NCBI RefSeq assembly: GCF_022045235.1
Contig: NW_027266275.1
Coordinates: 29,698,001-29,762,000 of the forward strand
Reading direction: 5' to 3'
Length of the DNA stretch: 64,000 bases
Source of the DNA: Haliotis cracherodii
Taxonomy: Eukaryota
Below the pieces are notes generated by a model. That model searched no databases. It was given only the letters and a program-made list of their open reading frames with translations, and was not told the DNA's origin. Positions 52,740-55,700 of the stretch are shown here, one piece after another. The position numbers and the translations under genes were made by a program. Position 1 is the first letter of the stretch. Every line of letters begins with the position of its first letter.

Positions 52740-55700
52740 TTAGGAGTCGAGTCGCGCCAATTCACTGGTGTATATTCCAATACTCTCCATGTCGTACAGT
52801 ACAAAGTAGATTTGCTTCAGAGAGCTCGTCATCACTGTCATGAAGTAGTTGCTGATGGCGCGGAGAATGATCTGAGCTGCCGTCTGCTTCGGGAACCCAG
52901 CGCTAGGATACAAGAATGAGGACTGTGAGGGGAAAAAGTTTGTCTGTGGTTTGTGAGTGCAGTTGTATTTGCATTGTACATTCATGTGAATCACAGTGAA
53001 AAGCTACACCAGACATCTTACTTAAAGTGCCATGAACTCTTGGAAAACTGGCAACTCTAATGATGGATGTTAACTTTGACAGTCCCTATGTTTATTTGTT
53101 CATAGTTTAATGCCTCACTCAACAATTTTCAAGCTAAATGATGATGGTCTATAAACAATCAAGTCTGAACCAGACAATCTAGTGATTGACATCATGAGAA
53201 TTCATGTACACAACTGGGATAAGATGACATGCACCAACCAAGTCAGTGAGCCTGACCACCAGATCCCATTAGTCGCCTCTTTACGACAAGCATGAGTTGT
53301 CTAACAATGACATATATTGGAAGCATTTACCACTTTGGTAAAACCTACAAACATTAGAATGGTGCTGACAAACCAAGGATCATAATCTGGGCAAATCTGT
53401 GATTCAAACCCATGATTACTGGATCCTGGTATGGCTAAGGGAAGCAACTCCGACAGAATTGCAGTCTCAGATGACTGGGTCACCCTCATACCCCTACAAA
53501 ATAGCAATGATGAATTCGAGTGTTGAATACATTTGCTTAGGGAAATGAAATCATGAGATGTAAAAGTGCAGAATGTTAAACAGTGGAGATGTAATAAAAT
53601 TTAAAAAAAACCAGAAATCAAAAACTGTTCAGCTGTGATCAGTCCAAGCATGTCCTAAGGCATCCAAAGTGGCATCAAAATGTTTCGATTTGTCTTGGAA
53701 AGTTTTTGGAGAGGCCATCAACATGGGAAGGTATTCAGAGAGGCAATCTAATTCAGAATGGGTTGATTACTGCCGTCATCAGAGAATGTGTCATAAGAAT
53801 TGGAAGGCTTTCGAACGGGGGCCATCAACATGAGAAGGTGTTGACCAATGAGAGACCAAGATCAGAAGGGCTTCTGAACCAAGTGTTCGTTGCAGTCGTC
53901 AGCAGATGAAAGGTCATCACAGTGGGAGGGTGTTCTGAGAGGCAACCACTAACAGAATAGTTTCAGGGAGGTCATCATCATCAAAGGGGTTACAGAGAGG
54001 TCATGAACAGCAGGTTCGTTTGTTGTTTAATGCCACACTCAGCAATATTCCTTGCTGGATCTGACAATCCACTGATGGACATCAGAAAGGATTGAGAGGT
54101 CATCAACACCAGAAGGGGTGGGACAGGTGTTAGAGCATGTTGGGTGCCAACCTATCAGATGTTGTTCAAACAGGTCATCAACATCAGAAAGGATTGAGGG
54201 GTCATCAACACCAGAAGGGGTGGGGCAAGTGGAAGTGCATGTTGGGTGCCAACCTATCAGATGTTGTTCAAACAGGTCATTAACATCAGAAAAGATTGAG
54301 AGGTCATCAACACCAGAAGGGGTGGGGCAAGTGGAAGTGCATGTTGGGTGCCAACCTATCAGATGTTGTTCAAACAGGTCATTAACATCAGAAAGGATTT
54401 AGAGGTCATCAACACCAGAAGGGGTGGGGCAAGTGGAAGTGCATGTTGGGTGCCAACCTATCAGATGTTGTTCAAACAGGTCATCAACATCAGAAAGGAT
54501 TTAGAGGTCATCAACACCAGAAAGGGTGGGGAAGGTGTTAGTGCATGTTAAGAACCAACCAAACAGTGTTAACAGTCTATGCTACAGGTATAGGTAACTG
54601 ATGTGCCTTACCGCCCACTTCCAACAGAGGGGAAGGCCAGACTTTTCAGGTTTTTCTCATCAGCCAAAGTTAGACAGTTCTTGACTGCTTTTTCCAACAA
54701 TTGCTGTGGGTTATCCATTTTCCATGTGGGGCCGTTACAATGGATAACATACTTTGCTGGGAAGTGGAAGCCTTGGCTGATCATAGCTGAACAAACAAAC
54801 AACCAAAGTCAATCCATGATAACAACACCACACAGACAGCAGCATCAAGTTCTGCAGCCAACACTGACATTCTCCTGAGACGCAGAAAGCAATGATGACA
54901 ATTTCATTTCTGTCTGCAGGTTGCAGAACTAGATGCATTACCTGTGCTCGGTATCTCTAGGTTCATGTACAGACAAATGACAACAGTGGCAAGACAAGCA
55001 TCTAGATATGCAATTAATAGGCCTTCCTCTTATACATGTTTTTTGCAAAAAGAAATCTCACAAGAAAGATATGGATAGCAACTCCTCAAATGCCCGAAAA
55101 AACTTGGTTCACAATGAGTTGAAGAAAATGTCCTCTGAATGCTATCACATTAGAAAAAGACTTATTTTAATAAATTCTATGAAAATAAATATGATTTGAA
55201 GACAATGATATATTCCATGCCTTGATCATCATCCACTGTTGTCAGCCTGTAACATGACCAGCTGAAGCCACTCACTTCCCACTCCCAATGGAAGGTATAG
55301 CTAAAGACTTGAGGTTTTTCTCATCAGCGAGAGTTAGAATGTTCTTGACAGCTTTCTCTAGCTGCTGTTGTGAGTTGGATGAACCCCAAGACGGACTGTT
55401 CACATGGACAACATACTTGGCTGGGAAATTACGACCTGGGCACATTGCCGCTGAAATGTATAATGTTATTAAGCTGACAATGGTACTAAATTCACAATTC
55501 ATGCTGAGTACCACATGATGTTAATTGAGGTAAGACATTAATCAGCTCCAGAATGGGTCAGAAGGTCAGAATGTCAATGGGTCAATGTATCAATGTAATG
55601 ACTAGGTAGTCATGTCGTTTGCGATATTAAATGTGAACAACAGATAGTAAAGTCCCACTTTAACAGCATTATCTCAGTGCTTATGCTATTGCAACTCTAA

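Follow-up and report, generated by a model that had tools for sequence, protein, structure and literature searches.

Is the choice between alternative macrodomain exons, by which vertebrates make two forms of the histone variant macroH2A, peculiar to vertebrates? The question is raised by a stretch of 64,000 nucleotides (nt) of the Haliotis cracherodii genome (contig NW_027266275.1, positions 29,698,001 to 29,762,000 of the forward strand; the whole stretch is called the window below, and all coordinates are window positions), in which a macroH2A gene lies on the minus strand. To our knowledge, macroH2A is the one histone that bears a metabolite-binding domain, and the vertebrate 1.1/1.2 switch is central to ideas on how chromatin senses nicotinamide adenine dinucleotide metabolism. 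A preliminary description of the window, made from its letters alone, had proposed that a different macrodomain exon is duplicated in this gene and that the two copies are mutually exclusive. Our analysis supports this proposal. With a probability that we put at nearly nine in ten, the window is the macroH2A locus, coding exon 7 is present in two tandem copies (7a and 7b), each messenger RNA (mRNA) takes one of them, and two histones of 390 amino acids (aa) are produced.

The macroH2A gene and its two copies of exon 7

Exons 1–3 translate to H2A motifs, with a Lys/Pro/Ser-rich linker within exon 3, and PF00125, PF16211 and PF01661 are recorded for those RefSeq Haliotis proteins whose successive parts match the exons of the window. 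The product has the layout of a macroH2A histone variant, with an N-terminal H2A fold, then a basic linker and a C-terminal macrodomain. The limits of exons 1–4 are approximate, being those of high-scoring segment pairs (62220-62396, 60346-60462, 58663-58977 and 58146-58298) with splice sites not fixed; the remaining features are listed in Table 1. When RefSeq Haliotis macro-H2A was searched against the window by tblastn, each part of the protein was matched once and exon 7 twice. A search of the whole 1.18-Gb assembly with the 7b peptide returned 7b itself (100%), 7a (72%) and then unrelated macrodomain genes (40% and 38%), and revealed no second macroH2A locus and no further macroH2A-type copy of exon 7 anywhere in the assembly. 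Because only 7b and 7a come before the unrelated macrodomain genes, we are dealing with a single gene at a single locus. Two H. cracherodii proteins in RefSeq correspond to the two copies: isoform X1 (XP_071105671.1, 390 aa) contains 7a, identical at 57/57 residues, and isoform X2 (XP_071105672.1) contains 7b. The isoforms differ at 19 residues, every one of them within exon 7 and hence in the macrodomain, and they bear out the expectation that inclusion of one of the two copies gives the 390-aa protein.

Sequence and translation confirmed what had been said of the exons themselves. Each is 175 nt long, has intron phases 1 and 2, is open, and carries good splice sites of its own, the acceptor ...tttcag and the donor gtgagt in 7a and the acceptor ...gttcag and the donor gtaagg in 7b. 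The last base of exon 6 is the first base of an Ala codon common to the two copies, which are both open from their third base for 57 whole codons. 7a ends in ...IGSG followed by AA, and 7b in ...VGSG followed by CG; the first base of exon 8 completes an Asn codon in the former and an Arg codon in the latter. Residues are identical at 39 of the 57 whole codons and at the split 5′ Ala codon, giving 40/59 in total, and nucleotide identity is 115/175 (66%). Different codons are used at 17 of the 39 identical residues, including 12 of the 25 in the C-terminal half, the same count as obtained before. The proportion of synonymous differences (pS) was 0.72 and the synonymous divergence (dS) about 2.35, which is saturated, with a nonsynonymous divergence (dN) of 0.27 and a dN/dS of 0.115. 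The duplication is old, as had been argued from the codons, and both copies have been kept intact under purifying selection ever since. The same part of the human macroH2A1 macrodomain (1zr3 residues 101-156) is matched by 7b with 75 bits (E 1.4e-20) and by 7a with 63 bits (E 1.2e-16). Adjacent, homologous, equal in length and phase and each equipped with its own splice sites, the two exons have the anatomy of a mutually exclusive pair.

Table 1. Exons, introns, repeats and splice joints of the macroH2A locus (window positions; joints as read on the plus strand)
Feature	Position	Strand	Basis or detail
Exons 1-4 (H2A histone fold, basic linker)	58146..62396	-	Six-frame segments; tblastn of RefSeq Haliotis macro-H2A
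Exon 5, single counterpart of the exon alternated in vertebrates, GGEVG (1.1-like) type	57526..57616	-	Translation, tblastn, joint to exon 6
Exon 6, constitutive, shared upstream partner of 7a and 7b	56507..56596	-	Joints to 7a, 7b and exon 5
Minisatellite in intron 6	55807..56527	-	Tandem-repeat analysis; period 52, 13.9 copies, 89% match
Exon 7a (a-type)	55276..55450	-	Sequence, translation, RefSeq X1 match, spliced-contig joints
Intron between 7a and 7b, 489 nt	54787..55275	-	Sequence
Exon 7b (b-type, vertebrate-exon-like)	54612..54786	-	Sequence, translation, RefSeq X2 match, spliced-contig joints
Tandem array in the intron between 7b and exon 8	54079..54549		Period 102, 4.6 copies, 95% match
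Intronic element complementary to the 7b acceptor	53626..53649	-	Inverted repeat I1, 24 nt, 83% complementary
Exon 8, coding part (last exon), shared downstream partner of 7a and 7b	52740..52902	-	Joints in 4/4 runs
Joint of exon 8 to 7b	52902>54612	-	4/4 runs
Joint of exon 8 to 7a	52902>55276	-	4/4 runs
Joint of 7b to exon 6	54786>56507	-	3 runs
Joint of 7a to exon 6	55450>56507	-	2 runs
Joint of exon 6 to exon 5	56596>57526	-	3 runs

Splicing and reading frame

For four public runs, each from a different study and with its own organism code, Logan contigs were aligned to 52100-57700, and the joints considered here are the best 15 of 38. All of those listed have CT..AC ends when read on the plus strand and hence GT..AG ends in the orientation of the gene. 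The four joints that the preliminary description had named as diagnostic of the two isoforms (56507>55450, 56507>54786, 55276>52902 and 54612>52902) were all seen in spliced contigs. Run X4 holds one 234-nt contig for each copy, spanning exon 8, the full 175-nt exon and exon 6; run X6 holds a 234-nt contig for 7b and a 204-nt contig for 7a, and 7a joints to exon 8 and to exon 6 are both listed. These contigs each contain a single copy with its exon 6 and/or exon 8 flanks, and the pattern is the bubble expected of two alternative mRNAs. Neither a joint between 7a and 7b nor one between exons 6 and 8 was among the best 15 of 38 joints. One X1 contig is unspliced (54612-55305) and continues from 7b across the 489-nt intron as far as 7a. 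The contig depths of a and b in the four runs were 53.8:18.1, 44.4:103.4, 15.3:18.8 and 49.2:28.8; as these depths are comparable, neither exon can count as a rare product, and the balance seems to shift between runs.

The TAA stop of exon 8 is at 52740-52742, and the 3′ untranslated region (UTR) extends beyond 52100, with contigs covering 52100-52902. Over ∼800 nt of 3′ UTR in this stretch, there are 23-26 differences from the window in runs with organism codes A, B and D and 6 in the run with code C, yet the contigs of the first three codes with 7a or 7b alone show 0-1. The four runs probably represent several abalone species or divergent populations, all of which use both exons.

These data also bear on whether only one copy is functional, the other being a degenerating duplicate, or else a 'poison' or noise exon whose occasional inclusion has no functional effect. 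7b is nearer to the vertebrate exon (75 vs 63 bits), leaving 7a as the odd one out, and contig depth is a weak measure of use. However, both copies are open, with a dN/dS of 0.115 at saturated dS, the depths are comparable in all four runs with the deeper copy changing from run to run, and each type retains its own diagnostic residues across three phyla (see below). A dead duplicate is largely ruled out by these observations, and we regard it as very improbable. The preliminary description had foreseen a second objection, namely that the exons might belong to separate loci or to a mis-assembly. Haplotype collapse or expansion, or the erroneous joining of two loci, is conceivable in general for a mollusc assembly of 1.18 Gb, given repeats in the introns on either side, but a nucleotide identity of 66% is far beyond allelic divergence, the X1 contig spans 7b and the intron into 7a, and both copies join the same exon 6 and the same exon 8. 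In addition, the tandem arrangement recurs in independent assemblies of other species, and the search with the 7b peptide left the genome without a second macroH2A locus from which a copy could have come. An artefact was rejected on the spliced contigs and the cross-species pairs, and we give it next to no credence.

As to how exclusivity is achieved, it would be enforced mainly by the reading frame, since 175 nt is no multiple of three. When 7a is followed by 7b, a TAA is encountered as the 17th codon within 7b, and when exon 6 is joined straight to exon 8, a stop follows after 21 codons of exon 8; the frame is preserved only by inclusion of one of the two. Both frame shifts had been foreseen, that of double inclusion with its TAA ∼17 codons into 7b, and together with the 6-7a-8 and 6-7b-8 contigs they support mutual exclusivity. 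The stop created by double inclusion precedes the last exon junction by 124 nt and would make the transcript a predicted target of nonsense-mediated decay (NMD), while double skipping would yield a truncated macrodomain. FGFR2 IIIb/IIIc is a frame-enforced mutually exclusive exon pair, and the abalone pair is like it in that its exons have lengths not divisible by three and inclusion of both or neither shifts the frame, with NMD or truncation expected. Unlike in FGFR2-type pairs, the regulators that can be proposed in abalone come down to a candidate RNA duplex. The intronic element downstream of 7b (Table 1) could pair with 54770-54793, which comprises the 3′ splice site of 7b and the first 17 nt of the exon, with a duplex energy of −38.5, compared with −26.2 ± 2.1 for 25 mononucleotide shuffles of the site, none of which was as low. 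We hypothesize that this element forms a long-range duplex masking the 7b acceptor, which would bias the choice in favor of 7a.

The introns also hold repeats. The unit of the minisatellite in intron 6 consists of the last ∼20 nt of exon 6 and a donor-like GGTAA, and the array would therefore put ∼13 decoy 5′ splice sites into the intron that immediately precedes the alternative exons; in run X3, contig depth over the minisatellite is similar to that over exons. Contig depths of thousands to tens of thousands were found at 53035-53408, 53970-54156, 56775-57148 and 57523-57700, and many joints and loose ends at 53147-53281, 54014-54051 and 57653-57694. The high-depth peak within 57523-57700 adjoins exon 5. 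These high-depth intron stretches are probably copies of a highly repeated expressed element, either similar to short interspersed nuclear elements or another transposon.

The pair in other phyla and its age

A profile of the 7a and 7b peptides was searched against 1.84 billion representative sequences, which revealed many exon-sized genomic open reading frames of two visibly distinct types and one full-length protein, Pecten maximus macro-H2A.1-like isoform X2. By searching with this Pecten X2 protein and looking up clusters, we obtained named RefSeq isoform pairs, and X1/X2 pairs that differ in exon 7 only were found in 15 species of gastropods, bivalves, a chiton, a brachiopod and nemerteans. 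The gastropods with such a pair include H. cracherodii, H. rufescens, H. asinina, Pomacea, Gigantopelta and Aplysia, the bivalves include Mizuhopecten, Pecten, Ostrea and Mya, and other pairs occur in the chiton Liolophura, the brachiopod Lingula and the two nemerteans Tubulanus and Lineus. Accessions of the Aplysia a-form include NP_001267770.1 and GenBank ABW86954.1, and either type is represented among full-length proteins from transcript assemblies. The tandem order outside abalone is known from three gene models that read through both copies, a before b, in the annelid Paralvinella, the ark clam Tegillarca and the oyster Magallana gigas. The oyster model (A0A8W8HT01) has only ∼19 codons of read-through between the a and b copies; judging from this model, the a-b intron of the oyster may be too short to be removed by splicing, so that exclusivity would be steric, unlike in abalone with its 489-nt intron. 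Isoforms X3 of Pomacea and of Saccostrea end a few residues past the a-type exon, by read-through or at an alternative 3′ end, and would lack the end of the macrodomain. No isoform label is attached to the RefSeq entries of arthropods, echinoderms, a hemichordate and a priapulid, and the differences between Octopus macroH2A isoforms are located outside exon 7.

A tree of the exons (51 rows, 59 columns) united all 13 b exons in one 98/93 branch with the single, b-like exons of amphioxus, vertebrate macroH2A1, insects and Limulus, while the a exons all fell outside this branch, with hemichordate and coral exons. In no case did an a/b pair cluster by species. Approximately unbiased (AU) tests rejected a single clade of the a and b copies for Haliotis (p 0.0023) and for the nemerteans (p 0.0035), ruling out a duplication specific to either, and were borderline for Lingula (p 0.063). 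By these comparisons the duplication is older than the split of molluscs, brachiopods and nemerteans, and it probably also predates the split of annelids. We place its origin at or before the lophotrochozoan common ancestor, because orthologous pairs are found in those phyla and a tandem model in an annelid. A single clade of all lophotrochozoan copies was not rejected (AU p 0.16), so that a lophotrochozoan origin and an older one are both compatible with the data.

Several observations point toward the older date, namely the grouping of b exons with those of amphioxus, vertebrates, insects and Limulus, that of a exons with those of a hemichordate and corals, and a gene model from a centipede. 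In this Strigamia maritima model (T1ITF6), a full copy ending in ...GTGN precedes the final 36 residues of another that ends in ...GSGR; as an unverified hint, this may be a tandem arrangement beyond Lophotrochozoa, with the copies ordered as they are in lophotrochozoans. When regions were searched with the Strigamia model, no further pair came to light in myriapods or other arthropods. We consider it improbable that the a/b pair is older than Lophotrochozoa and was present in the protostome or bilaterian ancestor; if it was, the ancestral animal macroH2A would have been splice-switched, most lineages would have kept one copy, and vertebrates would later have built a second switch.

Exon types, the ligand pocket and the vertebrate switch

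Comparison of 13 species pairs revealed seven type-specific positions, given here in human macroH2A1.1 numbering. Residue 273 is V in the a-type and C in the b-type, and the corresponding residues, a-type first, are S and G at 275, G and K or S at 279, I or V and C at 294, I or L and F at 308, S or G and G at 312, and N (T in 2/13) and R at 315. The vertebrate exon agrees with the b-type at 273, 294, 308, 312 and 315 and with the a-type at 275 and 279. Exon 7 corresponds to human residues 257-315, a strand-helix-strand segment with the GSG phosphate-binding loop at its end. One loop of the pocket in the mammalian protein (369 aa) is G312-S313-G314-R315 and the other is G223-G224, and G224E and G314E each abolish binding of poly(ADP-ribose) (PMC5770377). 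The last exon-7 residue, the type-specific N or R, is the equivalent of R315 and a neighbor of G314, and many a-type exons change residue 312 as well. Because the type-specific residues include this neighbor of G314, they could give a macrodomain pocket that differs in the binding of ADP-ribose-type ligands or of partners; judged by position, unequal binding of ADP-ribose-type ligands by the a and b isoforms is a tentative proposal, to which we give somewhat less than even odds. Rather less probable, in our view, is a real switch that is neutral for ligand binding, the isoforms differing instead in stability, folding kinetics or expression control (for example NMD-coupled dosage). In keeping with such neutrality, neither type shows variation at G314 or in the GSG core, and the GGEVG loop of exon 5 is constant, whereas the maintenance of seven type-specific positions in 13 species pairs over approximately half a billion years, 315 and 312 among them, speaks against it. 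The stable a/b dichotomy argues for two selected protein functions.

The vertebrate MACROH2A1 1.1/1.2 switch concerns the same family and the same domain, and there too one of two tandem homologous macrodomain exons is chosen. A loop of the ligand pocket is touched in both, at G224 in vertebrates and at G312-R315 in abalone. However, the vertebrate switch alternates the exon of residues ∼198-230 (HPTN...GGEVG/G224), whereas the abalone switch alternates residues 257-315, two exons downstream. The exon alternated in vertebrates is single in abalone and of the 1.1-like type, as had been described; its translation contains the HPTN...GGEVG segment, and tblastn gave one match for it in the window. 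As this exon is single here, the abalone switch is independent of the vertebrate one, and the pair is an analog, not a member, of that switch. The two also differ in clade and origin, the abalone pair belonging to lophotrochozoan phyla and 1.1/1.2 to vertebrates. Of the preliminary description's view that a switch arose independently in one invertebrate lineage, the independence holds, the exon being a different one, while the restriction to a single lineage does not, the pair being present in several lophotrochozoan phyla. A 2025 paper has the alternatively spliced macroH2A exon arise with vertebrates and mammals (PMC12551714).

A literature search found no description of the pair and none linking macro-H2A with mutually exclusive exons, an earlier mention being possible, and the mollusc and annelid histone surveys do not mention macroH2A splicing. 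The RefSeq entries 'core histone macro-H2A.1-like isoform X1/X2' are the same two proteins, and they are silent on an ancient exclusive exon pair separate from that of vertebrates. The isoforms themselves are thus already annotated: RefSeq holds both, uninterpreted, and what is new may be their recognition and description, not the data.

Several points weigh against our reading of the locus. The RNA origin of the runs is a guess ('RNA?'), and only the GT..AG joints indicate spliced RNA. The best 15 of 38 joints leave room for transcripts that include both copies or skip both, isoform ratios are poorly gauged by contig depth, and the runs give tissue, stage and species as codes. Most isoform pairs of other species are Gnomon predictions, which are backed by transcript-derived full-length proteins of both types and by the Aplysia GenBank entry. 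Finally, the functional difference proposed for a and b is drawn from the position of the residues, and the candidate acceptor-masking duplex from the abalone sequence.

For work on mollusc macroH2A, the two isoforms imply that primers, antibodies and expression studies may have measured a mixture. The natural a/b protein pairs, which differ at 13-28 residues in those compared, are well suited to asking which features of the pocket matter. An ancient, independent switch elsewhere in the same pocket, in molluscs, brachiopods and nemerteans, would amount to parallel evolution, suggesting that toggling of the macrodomain answers a recurrent need rather than being a vertebrate peculiarity.

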